A DNA stretch of 64,000 nt, taken from Azolla caroliniana. Lineage: Eukaryota > Plantae > Polypodiophyta. The notes beneath the pieces were generated by a model. That model saw only the letters and a program-made list of their open reading frames with translations, did not search any database and was not told the origin of the DNA. A program made the translations under genes and the position numbers. Shown here piece after piece: positions 32,271-64,000 of the stretch (positions are counted from its first letter, which is position 1; each line of letters begins with the position of its first letter). The DNA lies in assembly GCA_043228905.1 (NCBI GenBank), contig JBHGNT010000013.1, positions 12,276,001 to 12,340,000 of the forward strand, read 5' to 3'.

Positions 32271-34386
32271 TGTCGTGATGTAAACATATCATGGGCAAAC
32301 ATTAATCGATATCATGATCTCACGTCAATACCCCTCTAGACGTATGAGATGAGGTTCAAGATCAGGTTACTATGGTAACACAAAGGTGTTTTAAAAACCA
32401 TGGGGGCGACAATTTAATGTCTTTCCTTGATCTCTATATCGATTTTTTCATGGCGGCTCCCCGAGGCTCAACCATGTATGTTCGCGTCATGAGTAGTTTA
32501 TACACGAAAAAAATGTTAACAATAAATTACGTTTCTTTGCCCACATATGTGGTTTTGGCTCTTTAAGTCCTATTACGAGGACCCCGAGGTGCACTTAGAC
32601 CTTAAGTCTAAACATGTGTTATAGTCATATGTATCAAGGATGTTGTATGGTCTTGGTCATATTTGAACTCGAGACCTCGAGAACAAATATATTAAACACT
32701 TGAGCCAACCAAGTAAGTTGCTCTTCTCGAATGCTTAATGTTTGATGCGTATAAGAGATATGCGAGGCATTTGATCATATATGTTTTTTTATAAGAACAT
32801 ATATGTCAAGGGTCCTTATTTCGCCCTCATTTACCAAAACTATGTTGGTATGTTACCTAACCTCAAGTCTCGTAATTACGATGGCATACGCCAAAGTGCA
32901 ACCTAATGGTCAAGCCAAATGAGCCCTCGTTTTGTAGTAGGCCCACGTGGCCCATCACATGGTCACGTCATTACAAATGCCTCTCGTAAGAACGAGCTCA
33001 TGGTGGCATTGTATCCATGTAATGAGGGAGGGATGTTGGATACGTGTGTCATTGGAGCGACCTCACTTTAAGTGGGTCAAGCCCTATGTACTCAACATAA
33101 TTATGGCTATAGGCGTTTCTTTACGTAACGAAATTGAGGTCATCATAGTGTGTGATGGCAAAAAATCGTGAGGGAATCTCTGACAGAAACAGCTATCTTA
33201 ACTATTGATGTAACTGACCCTCCTTGAGGTATGAAAGGAGGGGAAGAAAGTTGTTTTGGGTATTGGTCATTTTGGAGGGGAAAGTGATGTCAGATTGGGG
33301 AGCAAAGCGCATTGGGTTTTTACTCCGTGTATTCACTTAGGTGGGTGAGGCCTTTACTCGCGTAGGAAGCCCCTGTGCTCCCGACTAGAGGCTCACTGGT
33401 GTGTGTGGGTTCCGAGCTCGAAGCTTTGTTGTTAGGTCTGAGGGCTAACATTGTATTCTTTTCAACATTTAATCGATTATTGATAGTTCTTGTGTCTGTT
33501 CCGATGTGTGTGTGAGTTAGATCGGTCCATCTGATTGTGTTCAGAATCATCTCTTCTGTCTTCTATGTTTGGGAAGGGGCTGTCTCTTCCCTCTTCTGTT
33601 TTGCGCATACTTGGTTGAGTTTGTGAGCCCATCAACTCATCTTCCAGAATTCGATAACAAAGCCGGATCAGATACGGTTCCGTGAGCCCGCTGTCGAGGT
33701 TTTCCTCGCGGATACGTGGAATGAGGCGGGACCTCGGGGGTCCTGTACCAAAGAGCAAGAGAGAAAGGAGAAGATGCCCACTACGGGCGAGAGTAGATTC
33801 ACAGGGACACGACCCTTCGACGCAAGGACGTGAGTGGGACAGCGACACAGGAAGACACAAACGTATGTATGTGTTAACAAACGACAAACGACACAACACA
33901 GAGTCGGTTACAACCGAACAGGCCGGCGAACAGATGCCGATACCTGTTCGTAAACGCACAGAAAGGCAGGAGCAGGCTGAAGGTGCTGCCGGGAGCACTC
34001 GGGCATTCCTCAGAGTAGCGCGAGCCTCCCGAAACCTGCACAGAAGGAAGCTATGGAGTTTGCGAACCAGAGAGAGAGAGAGAGAAGCCTTTGCACGCAA
34101 ACCGACAGCACTTCGTCCTCGACTCTCCGCGATCCCTCTACCCTCCTCGTCTCCCTCCTTTTATAGGCAAGGAAGGAGCCGTTTCCCCTTTACTCCCTAC
34201 CTACTGAATCTACCTAGGATCTCCTATGTACAACTTAAGGCGCACGTGCATGAAGAGTCGGTTTCTACGCTCCGGTGCACAGATTCCGCTTGTGGACGGT
34301 TTTCTTCACGACATCCGGCCCCACCTAACCGCGCATCCACCGGCATGTGCCAAATTGTGTTGGGACGGAGAAAACCGGTCCAGCCT

Positions 34387-37300: not shown

Positions 37301-37797
37301 AAACTGGGGTCCGACGCAACCCCTCTGATCCGGGACTCGCTGCCCTCCGGTAAGGGTGCCGCGACTGGCCTTACCTTCCGGTCCACAACCTTGTACTTTG
37401 TGCTAACTCGGGCCGTCCGATCCGACCCAAGCCCCCGACTGAAGTTCGCGATGACTTCGTACATCTCTTCGGAACATACCGGTATCGTCCGGTCTTCGTT
37501 AAGGTCTTCTCTGGCAACCTTCCTCAGCATCCCCAAGGTGTCGTCGAAGTAGACCGCCTCAACGGCTCCGCTGATTTCCTCGTTCGGGCCGAGAACTCCG
37601 CACGCTCGAAGTCGCACTTCCGCCCTTGTCTTTTCTCGCCCAACGATGCCGACTATCATGCACCCTCCGTTGTCGGAGAAGCAGAATTTTCTACCTATCG
37701 TACAAGGTTTCTTCGGTTTCTGTTCTATCGTACAGCTGTGGGGTCTTTCCCGAGTGTCCGGACTGTCTCGGCCCCACGCCTTGGCAGCCCTCTCTAA
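34387..37797 (-). CDS. pol: Element 1 RT-RNaseH-integrase ORF, in the -1 frame relative to gag-PR
   Basis: DLYSGYDQF, LPQGGTNS, PFLDD; RH VDTSPTGIG; IN HHCC and D-D-E core; frame is open from the slippery site. Confidence 0.92.
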   Translation of the reverse strand, partial: LERAAKAWGRDSPDTRERPHSCTIEQKPKKPCTIGRKFCFSDNGGCMIVGIVGREKTRAEVRLRACGVLGPNEEISGAVEAVYFDDTLGMLRKVAREDLNEDRTIPVCSEEMYEVIANFSRGLGSDRTARVSTKYKVVDRKVRPVAAPLPEGSESRIRGVASDPSLRDPACIGHTFTDGTLRELKIGGGGFLLPAEEDRFRRMLGRHRKAFAFSPEEIGCVDPTIVEPMVIFTVPHVPWNLKPIPVLRAHIPKLMELLRQKVDMGILESSSAPYSNRWFTVPKKNGTMRFIQDLQPVNRVTIRNAGIGPTIDEFAEAFAGRSIYSVGDLYSGYDQFQLAVESRDIMMMRTPLGLVRMCTLPQGGTNSVAHMVNAMNKVLRDCIPDITMPFLDDIPIKGCPVEEKDETVGPDGCRRFVATHIDDCEKVLQRLEDVRLTFSGEKSAFRQSEILVVGHLCGPYGRKPSPAKVEAISVMKTDCSSVMEVRRFLGACTFYHIWIPHYAHVAEPLYGLLKKGRKFEWRDEHTESVRNLKEALAAAPALQKAVYGKGTPVYITVDTSPTGIGWVVNQEDKNGIRFPIRFGTKVLSERQRGYAQVKRELWGIVSAVKADKDYLIGTEVVIETDCLPILGMVSGCATPDLAMLRWIAYIKSLDPEIRHISGKDNAMADMLSRARFDDEGSMVSEGEEVGVDFFEAAYVTTDGASTPALNGFDESKYNGEWLQIGGFFRTMTPDASWTKDEANRIRKKAYRFFLQDGYLWKHPKKRNGVPLRVVAMKEEQEELLTAYHDSPWAGHRGTWATFEKIKGKYWWSGLYRDVHRFVTTCESCQMHSIVRHRDELHPTYPPTIHFKWMVDLVTMPMGVGQMRYLVLAREDLTNQVEGRALQNKTTVVVCRFLIEDVICRYGCVGKIVADRGELDAEEAEELLDRLGVKLSLTTAYNPEANGKVERGHGPIVKALVRACGGQVGNWPRLLPYALWADRTMHSSVTGFMPAELMFGQKPIMPMERTISSSATVDWRDEMSREELLAARIRQLERRPKRIEEGDWVLVYDSSLDNQHRATRKFARRWFGPYVVQSANDNGTYHLAELDGTRIAIPVAGKRIKAFKKRHDNEPDPVNLDRDDERSETEEEPTGGE

Positions 37798-37803
37798 AAA
37801 TCC
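37738..37803 (-). promoter_or_regulatory. Putative -1 ribosomal frameshift signal (G GAU UUU, 6-nt spacer, pseudoknot)
   Basis: Slippery site 37803-37797; stem GGGCUG/CAGUCC; loop GUGGGG complementary to downstream CCCCAC. Confidence 0.75.
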
Positions 37804-39920
37804 TCCTGGTTCTCGCCACCGAGGGATTCGCGGTTCCTCTCGTTGTTCGGTCTCACGGTCAGAAATTGGACCGAATGGCGCCCGTCCTGGCTTTTGACCC
37901 TTGCGTAGGCTGAACCGTTGTCTAGCACCTTGGTCTCCATTCGAGCCACCGTGATGTATGGTTCCCCTAATATGACCGGGTGCGAGGACGTCTCCTGTAC
38001 GAAGAAGTGCTGGTCAATCTCGACGTCGCCGATCTTGACTCGCACGTTCGGGCAGGCCCCATGTAGTTCCTCGGTGGCGCGCGTCGCCGCCCGTATCTTC
38101 CACCCATGCTTGGTGTTGATCGGCCACTTCCCCTTCTTATAGAAGTCCATGGACATCAGGTTTATTTTCGAACCGTGGTCCACCAGTGCCACCACCGGTT
38201 CCTGAACCTCTCCGATCTTTACCGGGGTCTCCGTGGTCGCTCGAGCCCAGTGTGGCCTCGAATAGTGGCTCTCCGCCCACTCATCTGCCAGCGCCGAGTC
38301 GTCGATGTGCGTCGTCCGCACCTCTACCGGTCTTTCCGGATCCATCTCCGTCGACAGCCTCTTCCGTTTCACCAAGTCTACAATGGAGTCGTGGAACTCC
38401 TTCTTGGCAATCCCTAACACCTCTCGCAATGTCAGCTCTACTTTGCTGTCGAGGATCCGTTCTTCTAGGACCTTTCGTAGGTCTGTAGTCCTTTCTATCT
38501 CCGTCCCCAGTCGGTATCCGCCCTTCCTGGGGTTATCTTGCGAGCTGGACCCGCCGGCATCGTTCCGTCGTTGCCCGAATCGGGTCTCGTATCGTTGTGA
38601 GGGCCCGACCGCTCCGGCTTTCCCCACTCGCTTGTCTTCTACCAGAGCCTCGTAGTTCTGGCAGGCGGCTTCTACGAAGCCCGTCTTCTCCTCGACCGGA
38701 TCGCTCCACCCGGTTATTTCCCGGACCCGTCTTTGAGCGCGGTCCGTTTCATCCTTCTTCAACCGTGCGCCGGCAAGACCTTCCAGCATTGCCGACCAGA
38801 ATCCGTCTTTGCCCTCCTTTCGGGCCTTGCTGCCCCCGACCCGAATGTCGGCCGACGCCGAGTAGTGGATTGCCTCCACGTGCCGGGCCGCTGCCTCTTC
38901 CATCAGTCTCTTCATACCTCCTCGTCCGTCGTTTCGGTTTAGGGCCCTTCTAGTGTCGCCGGCGTGCACCCGGCCTTCCCACAGGTACACCACCCGGTTC
39001 CTCAACGCTTCTGCGAAATCGCCGCAGTCCTTCCGGATGTGGCCGACCTCGTCGCACCACATGCACCTATTCCCTACTGCCGGCCGTCGGTCACGAGCTG
39101 GTTCGCCGCCTTCCCTTCGAGTCTGGGCGATCTGGAGATCCTTTATCGCCCGCGTCAACTCCTCCAGTGCTGCTCCTCCGGACGAGCCATTGACCATGCC
39201 GGTCGAAGCCGGACCGGTTTCGAGCCATTCCCGGGTCTCTTCCCTTCGCACTTGCGGTGCCGGTTCAAGCCTCCTTGCTGTGACAGAGCCCGCACCTGCC
39301 GCCCCGTTGTCAGCCCATTCTCGCCGTTTATCGAAACGGCCACAGACTCTCTTAACCGCAGCCCAGTCGGTTGTCAGCCCGTCCTCGGTTTCCAGCAAGG
39401 AGCCGACTTGGTCCCGGTCCCGCTCGTCCACCGACTTGACGAACAGTAGGACCCGGCTCGTATCCAGAACGGTTCGGTCAAGCGTCGAAAGGCGCGCAAA
39501 GCGTTCTTCGAACTCCCGGAGGAGTGCCGTTGCGTTTCTTCCCTTGCCGGGGAACTCCACCCATTCCATGAAGTCCCTTTTCGAAAGCCGGAGCGCGTCG
39601 TCCAACTCGTATTTTTCTAGGAGTCGGCCTTCGAACTCCTCCCAGGTACGGCTCTCCGCCCGCACCTCGAGCACCTCCGCATGGATGCTCGGCATCGCCA
39701 CTCGAGGAAACCCGGCAAGACGCCTCTCTTCCGGAATGTCCCGCATCAGCATTTCTGCCCCGTAGGACGCCAAATACTTCGTGGCATCCTTTCCGCTGAA
39801 CCGGCCGATCGTACCGACGACCGCCTCAATGGCTCTATCAAGGGCGCCGAAGCCCTCGCGTGCACTCAGTATCCGATCCACGGCCGAAGCCATGGCCTCT
39901 GCAAGATCCGACCCTTTCAT
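37794..39920 (-). CDS. gag-pro: Element 1 Gag-protease ORF
   Basis: ATG about 22 nt after the PBS; CCHC knuckle CMWCDEVGHIRKDC; aspartic protease LVDHGSKINLM...ILGEPY; ends GAT TTT TAG. Confidence 0.9.
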   Translation of the reverse strand: MKGSDLAEAMASAVDRILSAREGFGALDRAIEAVVGTIGRFSGKDATKYLASYGAEMLMRDIPEERRLAGFPRVAMPSIHAEVLEVRAESRTWEEFEGRLLEKYELDDALRLSKRDFMEWVEFPGKGRNATALLREFEERFARLSTLDRTVLDTSRVLLFVKSVDERDRDQVGSLLETEDGLTTDWAAVKRVCGRFDKRREWADNGAAGAGSVTARRLEPAPQVRREETREWLETGPASTGMVNGSSGGAALEELTRAIKDLQIAQTRREGGEPARDRRPAVGNRCMWCDEVGHIRKDCGDFAEALRNRVVYLWEGRVHAGDTRRALNRNDGRGGMKRLMEEAAARHVEAIHYSASADIRVGGSKARKEGKDGFWSAMLEGLAGARLKKDETDRAQRRVREITGWSDPVEEKTGFVEAACQNYEALVEDKRVGKAGAVGPSQRYETRFGQRRNDAGGSSSQDNPRKGGYRLGTEIERTTDLRKVLEERILDSKVELTLREVLGIAKKEFHDSIVDLVKRKRLSTEMDPERPVEVRTTHIDDSALADEWAESHYSRPHWARATTETPVKIGEVQEPVVALVDHGSKINLMSMDFYKKGKWPINTKHGWKIRAATRATEELHGACPNVRVKIGDVEIDQHFFVQETSSHPVILGEPYITVARMETKVLDNGSAYARVKSQDGRHSVQFLTVRPNNERNRESLGGENQEDF

Positions 39921-39942
39921 CTTCTGCTCTTCTGCCGCCTCC

Positions 39943-39960
39943 TTCACGTCGGGTTCACCA
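39943..39960 (-). promoter_or_regulatory. Primer-binding site complementary to tRNA-Trp 3' end
   Basis: TGGTGAACCCGACGTGAA 3 nt from the 5' LTR; complements plant tRNA-Trp ...TTCACGTCGGGTTCACCA. Confidence 0.85.
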
Positions 39961-41119
39961 AGATGTCGAGGTTTTCCTCGCGGATACGTGGAATGAGGCG
40001 GAACCTCGGGGGTCCTGTACCAAAGAGCAAGAGAGAAAGGAGAAGATGCCCACTACGGGCGAGAGTAGATTCACAGGGACACGACCCTTCGACGCAAGGA
40101 CGCGAGTGGGACAGCGACACAGGAAGACACAAACGTATGTATGTGTTAACAAACGACAAACGACACAACACAGAGTCGGTTACAACCGAACAGGCCGGCG
40201 AACAGATGCCGATACCTGTTCGTAAACGCACAGAAAGGCAGGAGCAGGCTGGAGGTGCTGCCGGAAGCACTCGGGCATTCCTCAGAGTAGCGCGAGCCTC
40301 CCGAAACCTGCACAGAAGGAAGCTATGGAGTTTGCGAACCAGAGAGAGAGAGAGAGATTCAAGCCTTCGCACGCAAACCGACAGCACTTCGTCCTCGACT
40401 CTCCGCGATCCCTCTACCCTCCTCGTCTCCCTCCTTTTATAGGCAAGGAAGGAGCCGTTTCCCCTTTACTCCCTACCTACTGAATCTACCTAGGATCTCC
40501 TATGTACAACTTAAGGCGCACGTGCATGAAGAGTCGGTTTCTACGCTCCGGTGCACGGATTCCGCTTGTGGACGGTTTTCTTCACGACACCGCGTGCTTG
40601 GTATCCGGTATCAGGTAACTAGGTCGGATAGGCCACTACAAGCCTAGTAGCCTCTCGTCCTTAGGCTTCTTGGTTTGAGACTCCCCTGGTCCCGCCTGAT
40701 CCGACTTGCAAGCCGCGGATATCCGTGACAACATGTGTTTTAAATTTAATGGTGGAAGTTATATATATTTCAAACTCTAAGGTTTTGATGTCATAAATTT
40801 TTTTAGTCTTGGAATTTTTTGAAGTTTTTAATGTCTGAATCTGAGTCAGACGCCCACCTAGGAGTTGGTCGCGATCTTGATTTGAGTCGGGTGCTTGCCC
40901 TGAGACGATCGAGCTCTTGCAATTCGAAGAGTAGGGCTCTTGGTGACAAATGCGAGCACTTAGTGACAGAGGCTATTAGCTTTTTTTTAATGGCGCGCTT
41001 TCTATGGATAAAGATCGGACGGTGCAGATTGCAAGCGCCCTCAGCTAAGCACCCTGCACCGTCCATGCCCGCGATTCCCTCTCATGCCTCTTTATGATTT
41101 GGTAGCATATAGACACGAG

Positions 41120-50059: not shown

Positions 50060-50960
50060 TTGTTAGGTTTCCTCAACCTTAATATGTTGGGATTCAATAA
50101 TAAATTCTCCTAATATTATCCTTACAAATGACTCGAAGAGGATTTTTGGTTGGCCGTTTTGGATGCCTCCATAAATGCCTTTCATGTAAAAAAAACTTGA
50201 ATGGGTTGGATTCTTGACCTTCATATGTGTCTTTGAACATTATGCTTACATTAAACTTATCTTGAGGCTTAATGGATACTTGATGAGCAACTTGATGGCT
50301 TGTAGTTGTCCAATTCTTATCTTTAGTTTGCATCACCTTTTCATTTATGCACCTTGCTCTTGACAACATATTTGCAACTAGGTTTTATTTGCCATTTATA
50401 TGCCATAATTTTGGGTTCACGGTTTTGATGTACATAATCCACCGAAGCATTGCAATACCATGTATCTTGCAACTTGCTATCATTCTGATGAGTGGTTTCA
50501 ACCACTACATTTGCTCCAATCAAGTAATCTCTATATGTTTTTAATGCAGTAAGGAAACCCCACAATTCTCATTTAACTTGTGCATAATTTCTTTGTTTTT
50601 CATTCAATATATTTGCTCCAAACCAGATAGCATATCGATGTTGCTCTTCATCTTATTGGTTTATAACCCAACCGATCCCAATCGGGCTAGTATCAACTAT
50701 CACTATAATTGGTCTTTCACCTTTGTAGTCTGGTTGATGGAGATCTAGAGCTTTCAATAATGCTTCTTTCAACTGTTGAACAACTTATGTATGTTCATCA
50801 ATCCAAACAAACTTCTTCCCTTTTCTTAAAAGTTGGTACAGAGGATCTGAGACATGTGCAAAGTGTAGTAACCAAATATGATAAAACACCCATGCACCTA
50901 AAAATCTTCCCACCTTTGTTACCGATTCACAAACCTCCTTCACATTTTGTATTGCGTTAA
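50060..50960 (-). pseudogene. Degenerate RNase H/linker remnant of the same Gypsy lineage
   Basis: VDTSPIGIGWV..., ELWGFLTALKTYRDYLIGANVVVET and HLWRHPKR, homologous to elements 1-3. Confidence 0.8.
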
Positions 50961-51631
50961 TTTTGATCAGTGAAGGCTTTCAAGAGAACAACACAGAATA
51001 TTGCTCGGCCACAACCGAGTAATGAATCACTTCAATGAGAATGAAACACAAAAATGGGAAGTAGAGAGTACACAGAATGTTTACGTGGAAAACCCTAATG
51101 GAGAAAAACCACGGGAGCCCACAAACTCCAAACTATCACTATATGAGAAGGGTACAATCAGAGACTCGGAGGCAACGACCTTGAGCTTTGTATCTTCACC
51201 AACTAGTGGTTACAACAGAGTATCACTTTGTATCTCCTCTCTCGCTATACAACGATTATACACACACAACAATATGACCACGTACACTCCCTCAACAAAG
51301 TGATTGCCCTAAGTCATATTTATACTTATATGAACTTAGGGCTATTTACAAATATAGCCTCAATAGGCTTACTCAAAACATATTTACAAGTATGTCTTCT
51401 CTTTCGGTTCTCACCGGATCCATCCGATCTGGTTTCCGGATCTCTTTCGGTTCTCACCGGGTCCTCTCCATTCATAACCAGATCCCATCCAAAGGGACCG
51501 ATTTCCCAACAATCTCCCCCTTCACTCTAGAATGGGATGTCTCACCAGCCCCATCCGTTTTCGACACGCTGTCGTGAAGAATGTGCTTCACGATATAAAA
51601 ATGAGCTTAAATGTTATATTTAATAATATTT

Positions 51632-51825
51632 GAGAGACTTGAACCCACATCCTTATATACGATGTACAATGTACATACCACTAGGCTAGGCTATTTATTT
51701 GTAAAAGTGTGTAATAAATGTGCTTCATGATATAAGAATGAAGCTATATATTGTATTAAGTAAAATTGAGGGACTTGAACCCTCAACCTTGTATACCAAG
51801 CACCAAGCATACACCACTAAGCTAG
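51632..51825 (-). other. Two tandem antisense tRNA-like A/B-box modules in U3 of the element 2 LTR (copies near 55871-56064)
   Basis: TAGCCTAGTGG...GTGGGTTCAAGTCTCTC and TAGCTTAGTGG...GAGGGTTCAAGTCCCTC (perfect T-arm in the second). Confidence 0.7.
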
Positions 51826-52063
51826 GTTAGTTATTTTAGAATGCATTTTCATCATTATACTTATCCCATATCTATTTTCATACATAGCCATCATTCATCA
51901 CATGCAATGCATGTGCGCCAAATGGCGATCATGCATTACATGTAACTCATGCATGCCATGCTCCCATACATTACCATATGCATGGCAACACTTATATAAA
52001 GGGGGGGAAGGGAAAACAAGGGAGGGAATCAAGAGAGAGTGAGAAAATAATACAATTAACTAA

Positions 52064-52135
52064 AGAAGACTAGCTCGTTGGGTGGAGAACCTCTCGTTTC
52101 GAAGTTGAGGTCGTGGGTTCAAATCAAGGGTCGGT
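52064..52135 (+). other. Sense tRNA-like module downstream of the TATA box in the element 2 LTR (copy near 56303-56374)
   Basis: TAGCTCGTTGG...TTTCGAA loop...GAGGTCGTGGGTTCAAATC. Confidence 0.6.
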
Positions 52136-52522
52136 AGAGAATGTGTTCAATTTGCGATCAAGGATTGTAAAGTTGGTAAAATATTGTCTTTCTAATATAC
52201 ATCATGTTTATATCAAATACTCTTGCTTCTTGATTCATACTTTGTCTCAATCTTCCTTATTAAATCATATTTTGTCTCTATCTTGCTTCTTGAATCATAT
52301 ATTGTCTCTATCTTCTATCTATTCTCATCTCTCTCACACACACACATTACTCGTAACTCTTCTTCTTGCTACTCTTAACCTTTCTAACATCACCATACAA
52401 GCCTTATTAAAATTTAAGTTCCTTCAACTCCCCTTAACCTTCGTCCCTGCGACTTCGCCGCACGAACCACAACTACCCCGACACATTTGGTGAACCCGAC
52501 GTGAAGGCGGCGACGAGGAGAA

Positions 52523-55500
52523 ATGGAGGAGCAAATGAGGCTTATGTGTACGATGATGGAACGAGTGATGCGGGAACAAGGGATTTAGGATACAATAACT
52601 TATTTGGAAGCAATTGAAGAAGACAACGAAATCCAAGTTCCTGTCCATTCAATCAAGATGTATGAGGTCATTGAAGAAGTTGCTCGAAAGGATCATGAAG
52701 CACATGTACTAACAAAATACAAGACAGTGGAGAAGAAGGTTCGTCCTATTGCTGCTCCACTTCCAGGGGATAGTGAAAAGGCAATCAAAGAAGCAGCCAC
52801 AGAGCCAATGATCAGAGACCCACAAAAGGTAGGACATGTGTTTACTCCGGAAACAATACAAGGGATGAAAATAGGAGGGGGTGACTTCCTATTACCCGCT
52901 GAAGAAAAGCAGTTCAGGGAGATGTTAAAAAGGCATGGAAAGGCATTCGCATTCCAACCGGAGGAAATAGGGTGTGTGGATCCAGAAATTGCGGAGCCCA
53001 TGGTTATATTCACTATCCCTCATATTCCATGGAACTTTAAGCCAATACCCATGCCTAGGGCTAGAATCCCTCAACTATTAGAACTTTTGAAAGAAAAGAT
53101 AAGGATGGGTATCTTGGAACCATCGAATGCTCCTTACTCGAGTCGATGGTTCACTGTGTTAAAGAAAGATGGGCGACTCCGATTTATCCAAGATATGCAA
53201 CCCGTGAATAAGGTAACAGTCCGAATCTCGGGAGTAGGGCCAATTGTGGATGAGTTTGCTGAGATGTTTGTAGGAAGAGTTATATATTCAATGGGAGACC
53301 TTTATTCCGGGTATGATCAATTTCAACTTGCTATCAAAAGTCGAGATATAACTTCTATCAAGACACCTATAGGGTTAGTACGGATGTGCACCTTGCCGCA
53401 AGGAGCGACCAACTCAGTGGCGCATATGATGAATGGAATGAACAAGGTACTTCGTGATTTTATTCCTCATATTACAATGCCTTTTCTAGATGATGTTCCA
53501 ATTAAGGGATGCAAGGAGGAAGAGAAGATCGAGGAATTGGACGAAAGTGGTTGCCGTCAATTTGTTGCTGATCATATCAAGGATTGTGAGAAGGTGTTAT
53601 CAAGGATGGAAGAGGTGCATTTGACTTTATCAGGTGTGAAGTCAATATTTGGGGCAAAAGAGATATTAATAGTTGGTCATTTGTGTGGCCCATACGGAAG
53701 AAAGCCATCCCCAACCAAGGTCAATGCAATTCAAAATATGCAAGAGGAATGTACATCCGTCTCAGAAGTATGAAGGTTTCTGGGGGTATGTGTTTTTTAC
53801 TGTAAATGGATTCCGCATTATGCCCATTTATCTGAACCTTTATATAGACTCCTAAGAAAAGGAGAGATATTTGAATGGAGTGAAGAGCATTCAGAGGCAA
53901 TGAAGAAATTGAAGTACTACTTAGCACAAGCTCCACCATTAAAGCAACCTGACTACACCCGACCCATATATCTCACAGTAGACTCTAGTCCCATTGGAAT
54001 TGGATGGGTGATAAGCCAACAAGATGGGGAAGAAAGGTATCCAGTCCGATTCGGAGCAAAGGTTCTTAGTGGTCGACAAAGAAAATATGCACAGGTGAAA
54101 AGAGAGCTATGGGGGTTAGTAACAACAGTAAAGACAGACAGAAATTACTTAATTGGCGCTGAAGTAATAATAGAAACAGATTGTTTGCCTATTCTTGGTA
54201 TCATAGCTAATTGTGATATTCCAGATCAAGCCATGTTAAGATGGTGTATCTATATTAGATCAGTCAACCCTGAAGTTCGACATATCTTTGGGAATAGAAA
54301 TGCAGTAGCAGATATGTTATCAAGAGCAAGGTATGAGGAAGAGGAGATTCCAGACTCAGACGATGAGGACAAAGAACAAACAGTCCTTACCACAAGCATT
54401 ACCCGGGAAGGAGGAATGCAGTTTCTAGAAGAGGAGTATGAAGAAGAATTCAAGGAAATAGGGAAATACCTACAAACCCCTGACAAGTACAAAGGTCAAT
54501 CTGGAAAAGAGTTCGCACAGTTTCGTAAGAAAGCCCATAAGTTCTTCCTGCATGAAGGATATCTATGGCGACATCCGAAAACCAAGACTGGAAACCCGCA
54601 AAGAGTAATAGGTTCCGAAGGGCAAAGAAAGGAGATAATCAGAGAGCTGCATGACAAAGAATGGGCTGGTCATCGAGGAGTGTGGGCCACTTTCAGTAAG
54701 ATTAAAGAACGATTTTGGTGGCCTCGATACTATGAGCAAATAAAAAAGTATGTGGAAACTTGTCCCACTTGTCAATATTATTCAAACGTAAAATTTTGTG
54801 ATGAATTACACCCAACATACTCACCGGGGGTGCATTACAAGTGGATGATAGATTTGGTAACAATGCCACTTGGAGTAGGACAAAAGAGATACTTGGTTCT
54901 TGCTAGAGAAGATCTAACAAATCAAGTGGAAGGTCGTTCATTGCGAACAAAAGGGACATTAGGAGTATGTCAATTCATCTTGGAGGACATTGTTTGTAGA
55001 TATGGATGTATCGGGAAGATAGTGGCAGATAGGGGAGAACTCAATTCTGCGGAAGCTCAAGATTTTTTCGACAAAATAGGAATTCGGCTTTCTTTGACAA
55101 CGACGTACAATCCAGAAGCTAATGGAAAGGTAGAAAGGGGACATGGGCCAATAGTCAAAGCTTTGGCAAAGGCATGTAGAGGACGGGTCAGTGATTGGCC
55201 AAAAACCTTACCCTATGCACTATGGGCTGATAGGACAACTCACAACACTGTTACTGGATATATGCCTGCAGAATTAATCACAGGACAGAAGCCAATAATG
55301 CCAATTGAAGAAAAGATAACTACATGGGCTGTGTTGCCTTGGGAATCAGAAATGAGTAGGGAAGATTTACTTGCGGTTCGAATACGACAACTTCAATCAA
55401 GGACAGAAGACATAGAAAAAGCAGCTACTAGATTGAAAGAGGCAAGAATCAAGAATAAGGACAGATTTGACAAGATGAAAAGAATACGACCAAGAAAGGT

Positions 55501-55816
55501 GCAAGAGGGAGATTGGGTATTAGTATATGATAATAGCCTAGATAATCAATACAGTACTATTCGGAAGTTTGCAAAAATATGGTTTGGACCTTATGAAGTT
55601 AGGAAAATAACAGATAAAGCCACATATTTCCTCAATGAATTAGATGGGACAGAAATTCTTATCCCAATTGCAAGAAAAAGGATTAAAATATTTAAAAGGA
55701 GGGAGTCATTAGAGCCTGAATTTTATGAAGAAGTAGAAGAACTAAAAGAATCGGAAGAAGTGTTGGATGAACTTTGCACAACCAATGTGCAAGTTCAAAG
55801 GGGGTGGGTGTCGTGA
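52523..55816 (+). pseudogene. pol: Element 2 RT-RH-IN reading frame with its own ATG; two in-frame stops (52586-52588 TAG, 53771-53773 TGA)
   Basis: Single frame from ATG 52523 through PFLDD, VDSSPIGIG and the IN core; the TGA replaces a conserved Arg (SEV*RFLG). Confidence 0.88.
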
Positions 55817-58800
55817 AGAATGTGCTTCATGATATAAAAATGAGCTTAAATGTTGTATTTAATAATATTTGAGAGACTTGAACCCACATCCTTATATACG
55901 ATGTACAATGTACATACCACTAGGCTAGGCTATTTATTTGTAAAAGTGTGTAATAAATGTGCTTCATGATATAAGAATGAAGCTATATATTGTATTAAGT
56001 AAAATTGAGGGACTTGAACCCTCAACCTTGTATACCAAGCACCAAGCATACACCACTAAGCTAGGTTAGTTATTTTAGAATGCATTTTCATCATTATACT
56101 TATCCCATATCTATTTTCATACATAGCCATCATTCATCACATGCAATGCATGTGCGCCAAATGGCGATCATGCATTACATGTAACTCATGCATGCCATGC
56201 TCCCATACATTACCATATGCATGGCAACACTTATATAAAGGGGGGGAAGGGAAAACAAGGGAGGGAATCAAGAGAGAGTGAGAAAATAATACAATTAACT
56301 AAAGAAGACTAGCTCGTTGGGTGGAGAACCTCTCGTTTCGAAGTTGAGGTCGTGGGTTCAAATCAAGGGTCGGTAGAGAATGTGTTCAATTTGCGATCAA
56401 GGATTGTAAAGTTGGTAAAATATTGTCTTTCTAATATACATCATGTTTATATCAAATACTCTTGCTTCTTGATTCATACTTTGTCTCAATCTTCCTTATT
56501 AAATCATATTTTGTCTCTATCTTGCTTCTTGAATCATATATTGTCTCTATCTTCTATCTATTCTCATCTCTCTCACACACACACATTACTCGTAACTCTT
56601 CTTCTTGCTACTCTTAACCTTTCTAACATCACCATACAAGCCTTATTAAAATTTAAGTTCCTTCAACTCCCCTTAACCTTCGTCCCTGCGACTTCGCCAC
56701 ACGAACCACAACTACCCCGACAACGCGTCCAGCTTGTCGGTTGTCAACACCTTGGTCAGCATATCCGACCCGTTCTCCTCTATGTGGATCTTCGTCAGGA
56801 CAAACTCTTGATCTTCTACTCTCTCCTAGATCCAGTGGTACCTCCGTTGGATATGTTTCGTCCGGGAATGGTAGGCTGCATAATTCGCAAGGTGGATGGC
56901 ATTTTGACCGTCGCAGTAGAGCCGATATTCCTCATGTTGAATCCCTAGCTCTCAGATGAAGTCCTTCATCCAGATTATCTCCTTATCGGCTTCTACAGCT
57001 GCCATGTACTCCGCTTCCGTTGTCGATAGTGCAACAGACTTCTGCAGCCTCGATTGCCATTATATAGCTCCCCCTACATAAGTCACGACAAATCCGAATG
57101 TAGACCGACTGGTATCTGCATCAACCGACATATCCAAATCAATGAATGCGTCAAATTGGGGATTACCGAAGTTGAACCAGAGGCACATACTCGAGGTGTC
57201 TTTCAGATACCGGAGTATCCAGTGCTCTCTTCTGGGATTGCTCATGAACCGGCTCACCACTCTTATTGCATATCCGATATACAATTGGGTACATACCATT
57301 GCGTACATCAAGCTCCCGACGACATAGGCATATGGTATCTTCATCATATCCGTCTTCTCCACCTTTGTTCTTGGGCTTTGTTTCCAAGAAGTTTTGGGCT
57401 GAGGCACTCTCGACGGCGACATATGTGATAAACAGATCACCCTCAATACCCTTGGACGAAGACACGCCACAGAGAGTCTGGACCGGTAAGGAAGTGTCCC
57501 ACTGGCATCTGAAGGTTTTCGAGTGTCTTGCGTATGTGCATGTAGCTAAGGACCGGAGAGGAAAACTAGATCCAAAGACCCGGCCATGCATATTCCTCGG
57601 TTACGGCGACGATGAGTTCGGCTACCGAGTGTGGGACCTGATCGACAAGAAGGTATTCCGGAGTCCAGATATTATCTTCATGGAGGACAAGACGCTCACT
57701 AACTGGGAGTCGGAGAAGAAGATAATGAACTCCGAGTCGACTAGTAAGGATCGATTCTACGATGAGCAGACCCAACCGGCAAGAGACCCGTTAGCACTCG
57801 AGGAACCAGCCGGTTACGGTGAGGATACCGAACCGGCAGAAGAAGAAGTAGAGGAAGCTGAAACCGGAACCGGCCAAGACCCCGAATCGGATTCGGATGA
57901 AGAGCAAATGGAGGAGCCGGTTACCGAAGCCCAAAGACGGAGATATCTTCTCATAGAGAGAAGGGCCCCCCGAAGATTTCCGGATTCAGAGCATGTGCTG
58001 CTGACCGATGAGGGAGAGCCGGAAAGCTTCGAAGAAGCGAAGGATGACACCCACAACCACAAATGGTTAAGTGCCATGCAGGATGAGATGGATTCCCTGC
58101 ATGAGAACCATACGTACAAATTGGTGGAGTTGCTGAAAGGAAAGCGGGCACTCCGAAACAAGTGGGTGTACAAGTTGAAATCGGGAGATGCTGGCAACCC
58201 CCCGAGATACAAAGCCAGGATCGTGGTGAAGGGGTTCCAGCAAAAGAAGGGCGTGGACTTCGACGAGATATTTGCCCCAGTAGTAAAGATGACCTCCATT
58301 CGGACGGTGCTGAGTATAGCGGCAAGCATGGACCTCGAGGTAGAGTAGCTAGACGTTAAGACGACATTCCTTCACGGTGACCTCGAAGAGGAGATCTACA
58401 TGCAGCAACCGGAAGGATTCGTGGAGAAAGGGAAGGAGCACCTGGTATGCTAGTTGAAGAAGAGCCTGTACGGACTGAAGCAGGTTCCCCGACAATGGTA
58501 CCGGAAGTTCGACTCCTTCATGACCGATCAAGGGTACCACAAGACGCAAGCCGATCACTGCGTGTTTGTGAAGAAGTTCGAAGGAGGCGACTTCCTGATA
58601 CTCCTTCTGTACGTGGACGACATGTTGATCGTCAGACGGGACCAAGCCAAAATACGGATGCTGAAGAAGGCTCTAAACCGGACCTTCTCAATGAAAGACT
58701 TGGGTCCGACAAGACAGATGTTGGGGATGCATATCATCCGGAACCGGCCAACGAAGCAACTGTGGCTGTCACAAGAGAAGTACGTGACAAATGTGCTTCA

Positions 58801-59937
58801 ACGGTGTTGTGCCTTTCGGCTCCGGATCGTTGCGTGAGTCGGGTGGGAACCGCTGGGGTCTTGGACTAGGAGAAAGAAGTTCGTGAGATAGAGATTAATT
58901 ATGAGTAAATAGCAAAGAGAAAGATAAGAAACTCGTGAATCACACGAGTATACTATATTAATTGGTACTTAGGGTGTTAAGAGAGAAGTAGACGTATAAA
59001 TCGTGAATCCCACGAATAATTTTTGTATTGATTAATCCTTAATCCAAATAATCAACAACTCTTTACATATTTCTCTCCTCCTTATATAAGGAAGGAAGAG
59101 CTAAGCATGGCTTCATGCTTTTTTTTTTACAAAAAGTGTTCATGTCCACTAAATGTGCATGTGATGCTTTTTTATTTCCTAAGTATAGGGCTCATGCACG
59201 CTAGATGTGCATGAGTTATTTTTAGTGTCTCGTGTTTTTTCTTTTTCATATATTAAAGAATACACGATTTACCTTTTAATAAAGGTATGCATAAATAAAG
59301 GTCTTATATATATTAAATCTATATTTAAAGCACTTAAGATAAGTTAATGTAATGGTAAGGTTGGGGTTTGTCAACGTGGAGGTGCAGAGTTTGAATCACG
59401 CCTTGCGCAGTAGTGAGTATTTCCTTTCTTTTTACATTTATGTCTCTTTATCCGGCTCTTCCTTGCCGGTATGCCGTTTTCTTCCTTGCCGGTATGCCGT
59501 TTTCCTCCTTGCCGTATGCCGTTTTCTTCCGGTTCTCCCCGAGCACTCCATTCTCTATCCGGAGGGACAAAAATATAATTTCCACATAGTGTGCAACCTA
59601 CACTACGACAACGCAAGACGAGGTACGACGACAAGCCCAATCCTGGGTGGAAAAAGCAAACGTGACCAATACGGGAACGTATGCGGCAGGAGTCCGGGAA
59701 CACAATGGAGCAAACAGAGAACAAAAGACTGGGGCCGGACCCTATTTGGCAGGTGTTAGCAGGCTGTGAAATCACATTAACCATGGAAAAACTGCTACAG
59801 CTAATTCCACGTTTCCGCCAGACCATAGAAGCACAGGTGGTAGACATACCTAGGGCGAGCGTTTTCTTCCGGTTCTCCCCGAGCACTCCATTCTCTATCC
59901 GGAGGGACAAAAATATAATTTTCACATAGTGTGCAAC

Positions 59938-62900
59938 CTACACTACGACACTCGCCCCCTCCAAACCCGCACATCCTCCGGTATGTGCCGAAGTTCTTGA
60001 TTCTTCGTATCCGTCTTCATCCGAAGCTTCCTCCGATTCTCCCCTTATGTCGACTATGAGTTGTAATCCACTTTCTTCGCTTCCCGCATCATTGTGGTCT
60101 TCGTCCGATTGCTCCTCGTTGTCGGCCTCGACTTGGATCACATAAGGTTTGTCGTCGGTCCGCTTCTTGAAAATCTTCACCCGCTTCCCGGCTATAGGCA
60201 CTCGTAGTATTGTTCCATCCAACTCGGACAGTCGGTACGTCCCGTTGTCGAAGACCTTCCGAACCTCGTACGGCCCGAACCACCTTTTCGCGAATTTCCG
60301 CATCGTTGTATGTTGATGGTCCAAGCTACTATCATAGACGATCACCCAATCTCCTTCTTCAATCCTCCTCGGTCGTAGTCGATGCTTTGTGTCGAACCGG
60401 CTTTTGTTCCGGAACCGTGCTTCGTGTTGTCGGCGTGACGCTTCCGCTACATCTTTCGGTCTTCCCTCCAGTTGTCGTATCCGGACCGCTAGTAGTTCTT
60501 CCCGGCTCATCTCTTCCTTCCACGGTAGTATTGTCCATGTCGCGATTGCGGTTTCCGTTGGCATTACCGGTGCTTGTCCGGTCATGAGTTCTGCCGGCAT
60601 GTAACCGGTCACGGAGCTATGCGTCGTCCGATCCGCCCATAGTGCATACGGAAGCATTTGTGGCCAATCCTTCACCCTTCCGTCGCATGCCTTCGCAAGT
60701 GCTTTCACGATCGGACTATGTCCTCGTTCGATCTTCCCGTTGGCCTCCGGATTGTAGGCCGTTGTCAACGTTAACCGAACTCCATGTTTGGCGAAGAATC
60801 CCCTAGCTTTGTCCGAGTCGAGTTCTCCCCGGTCCGCAATCACTTGTCCTACGCAGCCGTACCTACAAAACACTTCTTCCAAAAGAAATTGGCACACCAC
60901 GGCACACGTTTTCCTCCGAAGCGCTCGACCTTCAACTTGGTTTGTGAGATCTTCTCGAGCTAACACCAAGTATTTCTTTTGTCCAATCCCGGTCGGCATA
61001 GCTACAATGTCGACCATCCACTTGAAGTTGATTGTCGGTGAGAATGTCGGATGTAGCTCATCTCGGTGTCGGACCCCGGAGTAGACTTGACATTTCTCGC
61101 AGCTTTCTGTGAACTCCGCGACATCTTTATACATGTTCTTCCACCAATATCTTTGCTTGATTTTCACAAAAGTTGCCCATGTTCCTCGATGTCCAGCCCA
61201 ATCGGATTCGTGGAACTCAGACATTATCCGGTTTCGTTGCTCTTTCGTCCCGACTACTCGAAGTGGTATCCCATCCGGTCTTTTCGGCGTCCTCCATATT
61301 AAACCGTTTTCCAAGAAGAACTTTTGGACTTGCCTCTTCTTCCTTCGGATCTCGGCTCTCCTTTCTTTATCATTGGTTGAATCCTCGACCTCTTGTAGCA
61401 TCTTCCCGATCATCAAGGTTTCCCCCTCGTATTCTTCTTCCCGGAATTCTCGGATCACGTTCACTCGGCATATGTGTTCTGACGTGAAGTAGTCTTCGGA
61501 AACTTCTTCATTATCTGATTCGGTTATGTCGTCTTCAAACCGCGCCCTCGATAACATGTCCGCTACCGCGTTGTCCTTCCCCGAGATGTGTCGAACCTCC
61601 GGATTAAGTGACTTGACATATGCAATCCACCTTAGCATAGCCACATCCGGTATCGTACAACACCGCATCATCCCGAGTATCGGAAGACAATCCGTCTCGA
61701 TCACCACTTCAGCTCCGATCAAATAATCCCGATCCGATTTTATCGCCGACACGACTCCCCACAATTCTCTTTTGACTTGTGCATATCCGCGTTGCCTTTC
61801 GTTGAGGACCTTTGCTCCAAATCGGATCGGATACCGCGAACCATCCGAGTCGGCTTGATTGATGACCCACCCGATACCGGTTGGACTTGTATCAACCGTT
61901 ACTATGATTGGCCGCTCGTAGCTTGGCTTCTTAAGTGATTCCGCCCTCCATAGTGTCTTCTTGAGCTTCCTCATGGCTTTAGTGTGTTCCGGTTTCCACT
62001 CGAATTTCTTACCTTTCCGCAACAAGTGATAGAGCGGGTCCGCTATATGTGCATAGTGCGGAATCCATATGTGATAGAATGCACATGCACCCAGAAACCT
62101 TCGGACTTCCGATGTTGACTCACATACTTCCTTCATAGCTTGAATCGCATCGATCTTTGTTGGTGACGGTCTTCGGCCGTAGGGTCCACATAGATGTCCG
62201 ACCACCAATATTTCTTCTTGCCCGAATGCCGATTTCTCCCCGGAAAGTGTTAGGTGCACATCTTCTAGCTTTCGCAACACTTTCTCGCAATCATGAATAT
62301 GGTCGACCACGAACTTTCGGCATCCCCGATCATCCATAGTCTCATCTTTTTCTTCCACCGCGCATCCTTTCATCGGAATGTCATCTAGAAACGGCATCGT
62401 TATCTCCGGGATGCAATCTCGAAGCACCTTGTTCATCGCGTTCATCATATGTGCAACCGAGTTTGTCGCTCCTTGTGGTAGTGTGCACATTCGAACTAGT
62501 CCTATCGGTGTCCGCATGGTAGTGATGTCTCGGCTCTCCACGGCTAGTTGGAATTGGTCATACCCCGAGTATAGGTCCCCGATGGAGTATATCGCACGTC
62601 CGGCAAAAGCTTCCGCGAATTCGTCCACTATCGGACCGACTCCCGAGTTCCGGATCGTGACCTTGTTCACCGGTTGCAAGTCTTGGATGAATCGGAGTGA
62701 CCCATTCTTCTTCGGAACCGTAAACCATCGATTTGAGTACGGAGCACTCGATGGCTCTAGAATCCCCATCGCCACCTTCTCTTTGAGTAAGTCGATGACT
62801 TTCGGAATATGCGCCCGTGGCACCGGAATCGGCTTCAGGTTCCACGGTACATGATCAATCGTGAAAATCACCATCGGCTCCACTATCTTTGGATCAATGC

Positions 62901-63543
62901 ATCCGATCTCCCTCGATGTGAACGCGAATGCTTTGCCATGTTGCTCCAACATCTCTCGAAACCGTTTTTCTTCTTCTTGTAAGAGGAACCCACCTCCACC
63001 GATCCGAAGTTTCTTCCGGGTCTCATCTGTGAAGGCATGTCCGATATCCACGGACTTCCGAAGTGTCGGATCTCCCGAGACTTCTTTCTTCTTTTGTTCG
63101 CTATCAGCGGGTAGTGGTCCCGCGGCCGGTTTCACCTTCTTCTCCACGGTCTTGTATTTCGTACTTACCATTGCTTCTTCTTTGCGGAGCGCATCCGGCC
63201 CCATTTTCGCAACGATCTCGTACATCTCGACCGATTCCACCGGGACTACCCGGTTCCCTTGGCTTTTATCTTCCGCAAGCTCTTCAAGCCGTTGTAGTGT
63301 ATTCCCATAGAACACTTCCTCGATCACTCCCACGATTTCTTCGTCTTCTTTTATTATTGATGCCGACCGTAACTTATCCTCCACTTGTCGGTATTGTTTC
63401 TTCATTCCTCCGGTTACGGCCGTGTACGTAGATGCCCCATCCGGGCCGATTCGTACTTGTTTTGCTCCGAGAGTTTTCTTCCTGTGTGGGGTATCAGGGC
63501 TTCTCGGACTATCACTTCCCCACTCCGCAACAGTCCGCTTTAA
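59938..63543 (-). CDS. pol: Element 3 RT-RNaseH-integrase ORF (-1 frame to gag-PR)
   Basis: 1155-aa ORF extendable without stops to the slippery site; PFLDD, VDTSPTGIG, IN core. Confidence 0.93.
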   Translation of the reverse strand, partial: LKRTVAEWGSDSPRSPDTPHRKKTLGAKQVRIGPDGASTYTAVTGGMKKQYRQVEDKLRSASIIKEDEEIVGVIEEVFYGNTLQRLEELAEDKSQGNRVVPVESVEMYEIVAKMGPDALRKEEAMVSTKYKTVEKKVKPAAGPLPADSEQKKKEVSGDPTLRKSVDIGHAFTDETRKKLRIGGGGFLLQEEEKRFREMLEQHGKAFAFTSREIGCIDPKIVEPMVIFTIDHVPWNLKPIPVPRAHIPKVIDLLKEKVAMGILEPSSAPYSNRWFTVPKKNGSLRFIQDLQPVNKVTIRNSGVGPIVDEFAEAFAGRAIYSIGDLYSGYDQFQLAVESRDITTMRTPIGLVRMCTLPQGATNSVAHMMNAMNKVLRDCIPEITMPFLDDIPMKGCAVEEKDETMDDRGCRKFVVDHIHDCEKVLRKLEDVHLTLSGEKSAFGQEEILVVGHLCGPYGRRPSPTKIDAIQAMKEVCESTSEVRRFLGACAFYHIWIPHYAHIADPLYHLLRKGKKFEWKPEHTKAMRKLKKTLWRAESLKKPSYERPIIVTVDTSPTGIGWVINQADSDGSRYPIRFGAKVLNERQRGYAQVKRELWGVVSAIKSDRDYLIGAEVVIETDCLPILGMMRCCTIPDVAMLRWIAYVKSLNPEVRHISGKDNAVADMLSRARFEDDITESDNEEVSEDYFTSEHICRVNVIREFREEEYEGETLMIGKMLQEVEDSTNDKERRAEIRRKKRQVQKFFLENGLIWRTPKRPDGIPLRVVGTKEQRNRIMSEFHESDWAGHRGTWATFVKIKQRYWWKNMYKDVAEFTESCEKCQVYSGVRHRDELHPTFSPTINFKWMVDIVAMPTGIGQKKYLVLAREDLTNQVEGRALRRKTCAVVCQFLLEEVFCRYGCVGQVIADRGELDSDKARGFFAKHGVRLTLTTAYNPEANGKIERGHSPIVKALAKACDGRVKDWPQMLPYALWADRTTHSSVTGYMPAELMTGQAPVMPTETAIATWTILPWKEEMSREELLAVRIRQLEGRPKDVAEASRRQHEARFRNKSRFDTKHRLRPRRIEEGDWVIVYDSSLDHQHTTMRKFAKRWFGPYEVRKVFDNGTYRLSELDGTILRVPIAGKRVKIFKKRTDDKPYVIQVEADNEEQSDEDHNDAGSEESGLQLIVDIRGESEEASDEDGYEESRTSAHTGGCAGLEGASVVV

Positions 63544-63549
63544 AAATCC
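63486..63549 (-). promoter_or_regulatory. Putative -1 frameshift signal (G GAU UUU, 5-nt spacer, pseudoknot)
   Basis: Slippery site 63549-63543; 11-bp stem CGGACUGUUGC/GUGAUAGUCCG; loop GUGGGG pairs with CCCCAC at 63491-63486. Confidence 0.78.
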
Positions 63550-64000
63550 ATTCTCACTTGGGACAAGAGTTCCCTCTTGTTCCTTTCGTGATTTGCCGGC
63601 ACCGTTAGGAATTGGACGGATTTCCCTCCGTTTTGGCTCCGAATTCGCGCAAAAGCCGCACCACTATCGAGCACCTTCGTCTCCATCCGTGAAGCCGTGA
63701 TAAAGGGTTGGCCGAGGATGACAGAATGTGAAACCTCATCCTGCACAAAGAAATTTTGGTCAATTTCGACATCCCCGATCTTTACCGTCACATCCGGACA
63801 AGCCGCAAATAGGTCTTCTGTCGTTTTCGTGGCTGCCCGAATCTTCCATCCATGGTTGGTGTTTATAGGCCACTTCCCCTTTCGGTAGAACTCCTTGGAC
63901 ATCAAGTTGATCTCCGATCCGTGATCAATCAATGCTAGCACGGGTTCTTTGATGTTGCCGATTCGGACCGGAGTCTCCGTAGTCGCACGTGCCCAGTGTG
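63540..64000 (-). CDS. gag-pro: Element 3 Gag-protease C-terminal part (partial)
   Basis: HWARATTETP...LIDHGSEINLM...ILGQPF; ends GAT TTT TAA. Confidence 0.9.
   Translation of the reverse strand, partial: HWARATTETPVRIGNIKEPVLALIDHGSEINLMSKEFYRKGKWPINTNHGWKIRAATKTTEDLFAACPDVTVKIGDVEIDQNFFVQDEVSHSVILGQPFITASRMETKVLDSGAAFARIRSQNGGKSVQFLTVPANHERNKRELLSQVRMDF

Follow-up and report, generated by a model that had tools for sequence, protein, structure and literature searches.

Retrotransposons whose gag and pol functions are divided between separate elements are already known as a concept, with Cinful/Zeon of maize and BARE-2 of barley as examples. BARE-2 is reportedly a conserved and abundant Gag-less subfamily with its defect at the start of gag, the subject of 'Life without GAG' by Tanskanen et al. 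in 2007. In maize, Cinful carries the polyprotein and Zeon the GAG, and 25 further families likewise distribute GAG and POL over different copies (Stitzer et al. 2021, PMC8547701; for the Cinful/Zeon split, Sanz-Alferez 2003, as cited in PMC8547701). Less than 1% of the copies in such split families hold both GAG and POL (PMC8547701). Here we analyze a long terminal repeat (LTR) element, designated element 2, in a stretch of 64,000 nt from Azolla caroliniana (GenBank assembly GCA_043228905.1, contig JBHGNT010000013.1, positions 12,276,001 to 12,340,000). This whole stretch is referred to as the window, and all coordinates are window coordinates.

Two other described systems bear on element 2. 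Non-autonomous Athila elements of Arabidopsis show purifying selection on their open reading frames (ORFs) across several copies (Marco and Marin 2008, PMC2410132). Phygy is a moss lineage of non-chromovirus gypsy elements that are short and almost wholly coding and have a peculiar 4-bp NCGN target site duplication (TSD) (Neumann et al. 2019, PMC6317226). A first-pass annotation, made from the sequence alone, had described element 2 as a recently transposed pol-only element, i.e., either an enzyme-only partner that borrows Gag and protease in trans or a reverse-transcribed spliced pol mRNA. Our preferred reading, to which we give a probability of roughly 0.5, is that element 2 is a defective, non-autonomous internal-deletion derivative of an ordinary Phygy-like Ty3/gypsy family, and that the deletion arose by a replication route.

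Structure and insertion of element 2

Element 2 occupies 51570-56722 (plus strand), including both LTRs. The 5' LTR (51570-52483) and the 3' LTR (55809-56722) are direct repeats of 914 bp with TG..CA termini, which are separated by no indels and three transitions (at 51591, 51616 and 52460), two of them at CpG. A divergence of 3 in 914 bp makes this a very young copy, as was implied when it was called recently transposed, and the near-identical LTRs, the primer binding site (PBS) and the polypurine tract (PPT) that had been listed were all found again. The PBS block, TGGTGAACCCGACGTGAAGG, covers 20 nt downstream of the 5' LTR (52488-52507), the PPT, AAAGGGGGTGGG, lies immediately upstream of the 3' LTR (55797-55808), and a TATA-like TATATAAAG is present in the 5' LTR near 51995. 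The tetranucleotide ACGC, which fits NCGN, flanks the element at 51566-51569 and 56723-56726. The TSD, previously described as perfect, is perfect at 4 bp, whereas a 5-bp version (CACGC versus ACGCG) is imperfect.

On the minus strand, the flanks of element 2 together read as a single copia-type pol C-terminus: ...HSRTKHIQRRYHWI, a stop, ERVEDQEFVLTKIHIEENGSDMLTKVLTTDKLDA, the insertion point, ACRKRMGLVRHPILE and a further stop. The copia frame runs on across the insertion after one TSD copy is subtracted. Because the flanking frame continues in this way and the target is duplicated over 4 bp, element 2 is a genuine integrase-type insertion.

Between the LTRs, a single frame of 1,097 codons opens at ATG 52523 and extends to TGA 55814-55816, 8 nt into the 3' LTR. 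It is interrupted by only two stops, TAG 52586-52588 and TGA 53771-53773, and with this qualification the ATG is in frame with reverse transcriptase (RT), RNase H (RH) and integrase (IN), as claimed. The ATG lies 15 nt past the 20-nt PBS block and 19 nt, rather than the reported 17 nt, past the 18-mer that the first-pass annotation had taken as the PBS; 21 codons (MEEQMRLMCTMMERVMREQGI) separate its start from the first stop. In Pfam and protein searches, for which the pieces on each side of the stops were used apart, RT (RVT_1, ~53162-53680), RH (RT_RNaseH_2/RT_RNaseH, ~53876-54256), the IN zinc finger (Integrase_H2C2, ~54623-54781) and the IN core (rve, ~54833-55114) were recognized, all on the plus strand. 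This domain order is that of Ty3/gypsy (Metaviridae-type) elements, whose hallmarks, TG..CA direct LTRs, PBS, PPT and TSD, are all present, and the usual set of catalytic motifs is visible in the pol translation. An exact look-up of the 638-amino-acid ORF at 53900-55813 returned no record.

What element 2 lacks is equally clear. No gag- or protease-like Pfam match was obtained anywhere in it, and the slip-site motif GATTTTTAGANAGGG, described below, is absent, so the earlier statement that Gag, protease and frameshift cassette are missing stands. An autonomous element would encode Gag and an aspartic protease in addition to RT, RH and IN; of gag, element 2 has 62 nt left. We also considered a large retrotransposon derivative (LARD) or a terminal-repeat retrotransposon in miniature (TRIM), and these were ruled out, as RT, RH and IN are all present.

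The LTRs contain several repeats of their own. The U3 region has a tandem duplication of ~145 bp at 51576-51850, and at the same place in the 3' LTR, and each unit includes, on the opposite strand, a tRNA- or short interspersed nuclear element (SINE)-like stretch (GGGACTTGAACCC...CCACTAAGCTAGG). Another tRNA-like piece with GGTCGTGGGTTCAAATC is found at 52085-52135 and in its 3' LTR counterpart. ARAGORN predicted no tRNA in the window, the tRNA-like U3 repeats included, and Rfam gave nothing at gathering score in the window, only a chance-level transfer-messenger RNA match in the LTR of element 2. In the U5 part, three to four tandem 30-bp repeats precede a short (CA)n run (52221-52344 and 56460-56583). 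A search for the PBS complement elsewhere in the window, as expected for self-priming, found none, and no tRNA 3' end matching the 20-nt PBS block was identified; the last four nt of the block (AAGG) exceed what a tRNA acceptor and T-stem explain.

Full-length relatives and the family plan

Relatives of element 2 were collected by a word-index protein search with its RH-IN piece, which led to cluster P0001 (94% identity, 53 members). Five metagenome contigs of P0001 members, L001, L002, L003, L032 and L033, were compared with the element, and their pol identity to it ranges from 93.4 to 97.8%, with L003 the closest (97.8% at the nucleotide level). All five carry a gag-protease ORF upstream of pol, and in all five the motif GATTTTTAGANAGGG (GAT-TTT-TAG) is followed by pol in the -1 frame; the slip sites are at L001:1209-1223, L002:2203-2217, L003:916-930, L032:1180-1194 and L033:1348-1362. 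The family plan is an LTR, the PBS, a gag-protease ORF, a -1 slip at GAU-UUU-UAG, an RT-RH-IN ORF that runs through the PPT, and the second LTR. When aligned with L001 and L002, the pol of element 2 is collinear with the intact 1083-amino-acid relatives and has no indels; L003 has a 67-nt deletion.

The 5' end of the family is provided by L002, which reads ...CCCCGACA CAT TGGTGAACCCGACGTGAAGG CGGCGACAAGGAGAA ATG GAG GAG CAA ATG AGG ... GAG CAA GGG ATG ATT GCA... In this contig the PBS, the ATG and MEEQMRLMCTMMERMMREQG- lead into a gag-protease ORF of 700 amino acids, which has a DUF4100 match. The leader MEEQMRLMCTMMER.MREQG of element 2 is thus the first 20 codons of its own family's Gag, and ATG 52523, which had been noted for a position like that of the Gag N-terminus of a neighboring element, is a real Gag start codon. 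The C-terminus of ORF1 in the relatives may contain the protease, as hinted by weak, sub-threshold Pfam retropepsin matches together with a D-H/S-G motif; a PDB sequence search with this C-terminus gave no meaningful match.

The deletion junction

Alignment of element 2 with its relatives delimits the missing segment. L002:1-158 aligns with 52427-52584 at 95.6%, and the homology ends at 52584, so that the gag remnant (MEEQMRLMCTMMERVMREQG.., 52523-52584, plus strand) comprises 62 nt, i.e., Gag residues 1-20 plus 2 nt, homologous to the L002 Gag N-terminus. On the other side, the homology of all five contigs to the pol of element 2 begins at exactly 52589, where they read ...GAATTAAGTTTTGAA before this point and GATACAATAAC after it. 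The 5' breakpoint in the relative falls after CAAGGGAT and before GATTGC (GGGAT/GATTGC; L002 only), and the 3' breakpoint falls after AAGTTTTGAA and before GATACA (TTTTGAA/GATACA; 5/5 contigs). The segment absent from element 2 is equivalent to L002:159-2438, or 2,280 nt, and it takes in everything in gag past the 62 nt, plus the protease, the slip site and ~77 codons at the start of the pol frame. The pol remnant (52589-55816, plus strand) accordingly starts ~77 codons past the family slip site, with the pre-RT linker first. Since the related contigs carry gag-protease and the slip site, and L002 gives the 5' end, element 2 carries one internal deletion, which begins at gag codon 21, ends at about pol codon 77 and measures 2,280 nt.

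The two sides are joined by four nt, TTAG (52585-52588, plus strand), that occur in neither parental flank: in the relatives, GGGAT of gag is followed by G, and GATACA of pol is preceded by GAA. A derivation of this filler from the slip site (GGATTTTTAG versus GGGATTTAG) was considered and dropped as not demonstrable, since the likeness needs additional indels.

The junction bears directly on the proposal of a reverse-transcribed spliced pol mRNA, in which a donor after gag codon 20 would have been joined to an acceptor before the pre-RT linker. A clean in-frame deletion that takes out exactly the gag-protease-slip block is what such a splice would leave. However, in the relatives the missing segment starts with GA or TG and ends with AA or TT, so that under no assignment of bases does it have a GT start or an AG end at either breakpoint (5' side from L002, 3' side from the five relatives). 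In addition, TTAG belongs to neither 'exon' and the join is imprecise. Because GT..AG is lacking and four filler nt are present, a canonical splice is not supported, and we consider this origin very improbable.

The filler also places the gag and pol frames in register, and it contains the first stop, TAG 52586-52588. The first-pass annotation had proposed that both stops in the fused frame could be single C>T hits. This explanation fits the second stop, TGA 53771-53773 (plus strand), which is an Arg codon in all relatives and a CpG transition private to element 2, but not the first, which lies within the filler. As the TAG is part of the filler, it was probably created with the junction, and the fusion of gag ATG and pol was probably never open. 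A random triplet is a stop in 3/64 cases, compared with ~0.001 per codon for a later hit (one stop in ~1,075 codons).

Does the deleted form occur elsewhere? The 26-mer spanning the junction, GARCAAGGGATTNAGGATACAATAAC, had no exact match in the metagenome contigs, a collection that does hold this family; copies with one substitution would escape such a search. Within the contigs searched, then, the other copies are full-length and the junction is unique, the situation that the first-pass annotation had itself named as refuting its reading and as pointing to a one-off deletion after insertion.

Substitutions and a possible pol-only sublineage

We next consider whether pol-only elements could be maintained and propagate. 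In this case element 2 would represent a sublineage of a bryophyte Phygy-type family that borrows Gag-protease in trans, in the manner of Cinful/Zeon, and its partners would be full-length or gag-protease-only elements. TAG-free copies might translate Pol starting at the gag ATG, or re-initiation at ATG 52658 after the 21-codon upstream ORF derived from gag might yield it, in either case independently of the GAU-UUU-UAG frameshift. In support of this idea, pol otherwise retains an intact, collinear frame, the frame is preserved across the deletion, split families do exist in maize (PMC8547701), and ATG 52658, which is in frame, is the first ATG after TAG 52586-52588, with no other between them.

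The substitution record was used to look for selection on such a form. Changes private to element 2 comprise 18 synonymous, 17 non-synonymous and 1 stop; those private to L003 comprise 8, 11 and 0; and the older branch that separates element 2 and L003 from L001 and L002 has 99, 45 and 0. The share of synonymous changes private to element 2 (18/36) exceeds a neutral expectation of ~21-30%, which again would speak for this idea. These private changes differ from those of the older branch at Fisher p=0.05, yet no difference is seen against those of L003 (p=0.78). By base, the changes private to element 2 are 33 transitions, eight of them at CpG, and 9 transversions. This is what a lineage would show that had been under constraint until recent times and has since begun to decay; as the time after the deletion is not set apart in these counts, they cannot serve as evidence for selection on a pol-only form.

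Other observations are unfavorable to a maintained sublineage. The stop within the junction filler means that the fusion was probably never open. Gag-protease and pol occur together in 5/5 related contigs, unlike the <1% of split families, and the junction is absent from the metagenome contigs. Constraint on the private branch is no stronger than in L003, a dead full-length copy, and much of it predates the deletion. A partner that frameshifts already provides Pol, and a separate source would add nothing obvious. For these reasons we regard the dedicated enzyme-only partner as improbable. If it were nevertheless true, and many independent copies with the same junction existed in the host genome, the split gag/pol families known from maize would gain a bryophyte counterpart and so extend to moss, and it would allow a test of whether Pol without Gag fusion serves a Ty3/gypsy element.

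Origin of the deleted copy

The remaining question is whether element 2 was born deleted or was deleted in place. We lean towards the former, in which the deletion would have arisen by a template switch of RT or in a master copy that was already deleted. One event would have removed 2,280 nt and left the four untemplated nt TTAG. The deleted RNA would have retained every known cis signal (R-U5, the PBS, the gag start with its 62 nt, the PPT and the LTR ends), and it could have been packaged, copied and integrated by the Gag, protease and Pol of full-length siblings, whose existence is clear. The pol of element 2 would then be a passenger, as translation from the gag ATG would end after 21 codons at the junction TAG, and even free Pol would be without the Gag fusion and the protease that normally load and mature it. 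Because any helper that makes Gag-protease and frameshifts is a source of Pol too, this pol would be cargo and not a contribution. Since its insertion, the copy has decayed through CpG transitions. In this light element 2 documents well the making of a non-autonomous LTR element, with a single deletion, a short filler and all cis signals spared.

The alternative is that an autonomous full-length copy was inserted and that illegitimate recombination or end-joining in the host chromosome later removed 2.28 kb, leaving a 4-nt filler. Plant end-joining typically leaves filler DNA. Deletion in place explains the breakpoints and the missing segment equally well as the replication route; it also agrees with a junction that is unique in everything searched and with relatives that are all full-length, and illegitimate recombination is known to truncate LTR elements in plants (PMC13570524). 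On the other hand, the copy is very young, with 3 differences per 914 bp between its LTRs, and the 2.3-kb loss is the sole length change in its 5.1 kb, neither the LTRs nor pol having indels. One large deletion with no small ones would be an unusual pattern of decay, if not a decisive one. Since the copy is young and has no other indel, a single replication-linked event is favored over gradual erosion in place. We therefore treat deletion in place as a real possibility, though a tentative one, and prefer the replication route.

Several points weigh against this preference. A single copy is at hand, and 'born deleted' and 'deleted in place' are not directly separable. No second copy of the junction was found by exact match in the metagenome contigs, which gives no support for a spreading deleted lineage. 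That element 2 was mobilized in trans is something we infer. The argument for a stop present from the beginning presumes a random filler, and the closest relative at the 5' breakpoint, L002, is ~92-96% identical, so that the true parent could differ by one or two bases.

Elements 1 and 3 and placement of the family

Two further elements of the same kind are found in the window. Element 1 (33693-40589, minus strand) is a full-length member of a sister family, with 625-bp LTRs that have 10 differences and a 4-bp TSD, GCGG. Its gag-protease ORF (37797-39947, minus) has 717 codons and ends GAT TTT TAG (slip site 37794-37802, minus), and its pol (34390-37800, minus) is in the -1 frame and open from the slip site. 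The RH-IN protein of element 1 is 55% identical to that of element 2. The C-terminal region of its IN is without 29 residues that element 2 and its relatives have, seen as an in-frame BLASTP gap near residue 990 (pol ORF 34390-37659, minus). Interior G+C is 57-60% in element 1 and ~39-41% in element 2, and it is 34-37% in much of the remaining window. Element 3 (59938-64000, minus), of the same clade, has an intact pol ORF of 1155 amino acids and a slip site GAT TTT TAA (63550-63560, minus); its gag-protease region runs past the end of the window. It is ~73% identical at the nucleotide level to the family of element 2.

Elements 1 and 2 had been said to share the first 12 nt of the LTR and an 18-nt PBS. 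The 12 nt are indeed common to both, whereas that 18-mer agrees at only 17/18 positions, and the identical block is one of 20 nt (in element 1, 39943-39962, minus). In shuffling tests, no shuffle of the 12-nt LTR start reached the observed number of matches, and PBS shuffles never gave more than one match, compared with the 2 observed. The PBS 20-mer was also present in 28 metagenome contigs (loci L004-L031; moss-like assemblies ERZ10343xx-ERZ10344xx), which include many otherwise diverged families, and the 12-mer stands at LTR starts in several of them. The shared PBS and LTR ends thus form no private link between elements 1 and 2.

A slip at a stop codon is common to the three families, in which the gag-protease ORF ends GAT TTT TAG (TAA in element 3) and the -1 pol is open from TTT. 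In addition, the slip site is followed by AGANAGGG in the five full-length relatives of element 2, and so it is in element 1, which likewise carries the motif GATTTTTAGANAGGG. The GAT TTT TAG site has the look of a conserved slip of a single tRNA at a stop codon, not of a classical X XXY YYZ heptamer.

With regard to lineage, named relatives at the protein level come from the liverwort Riccia (~57% identity). The 4-bp NCGN duplication characteristic of Phygy was found at two insertions, those of element 2 (ACGC) and element 1 (GCGG). The IN of element 2 is free of a chromodomain, as in the non-chromovirus Phygy: no Chromo match was obtained with Pfam on 53774-55813, whereas a chromovirus remnant in the same window does give one. 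The best reading is that the family of element 2 is a Phygy-like non-chromovirus Ty3/gypsy family, an assignment made by shared traits. As a by-product, the analysis shows a bryophyte gypsy clade with a common 20-nt PBS, common LTR termini, 4-bp NCGN TSDs and a GAU-UUU-UAR slip.

Surroundings of element 2

The window is land-plant DNA rich in retroelements, with nothing human-looking in it, and the sole clear host gene seen is an intronless pentatricopeptide-repeat gene of 816 amino acids (7143-9593, minus). The chromovirus remnant with the Chromo match lies at ~27.7-31.8 kb. A tandem array at 24016-24795 has an alternating spacing of 165/150 bp and copies that are 61-93% alike.

Element 2 itself sits in a nest of elements in opposite orientations. 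Its host is the degenerate Ty1/copia pol C-terminus described above (minus strand, 51489-51569 and 56723-57470), and a second copia fragment, with an integrase SH3-like domain and RVT_2, adjoins the site on the plus strand (57266-58840). Upstream of element 2, at 50094-50565 (minus), short ORFs that show RH/IN motifs of gypsy type in a decayed state (YRDYLIGANVVVET; FKFFLHERHLWRHPKRPTKNPLRVI) are a remnant of another element of the same clade.

Comparison with known systems

Element 2 resembles Phygy in that it has no chromodomain, is short, fills nearly its whole internal region with coding sequence, has an NCGN TSD and has bryophyte (Riccia) protein relatives. It differs in being without gag and protease, and Phygy has been described only from Physcomitrella.

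Like the maize Cinful/Zeon pair, element 2 has enzyme domains without gag beside relatives that bear gag and have related LTRs. In Cinful/Zeon, however, the split is family-wide with many copies of each kind, whereas here a single copy is split and 5/5 other relatives hold both parts; the many pol-only and gag-only copies that make a split family were not seen among the related contigs. Cinful, moreover, codes for 'polyprotein domains', while element 2 is also without protease. The likeness to BARE-2 is that of a pol-bearing LTR element unable to make Gag and thought to ride on the Gag of an autonomous partner. The defect of BARE-2 is at the gag start, whereas in element 2 gag and protease are physically deleted, and in a single copy.

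Finally, the non-autonomous Athila elements share with element 2 a deletion-type origin and the retention of some ORFs. They have kept gag, with or without env, and lost pol, and thus are the mirror image of element 2.

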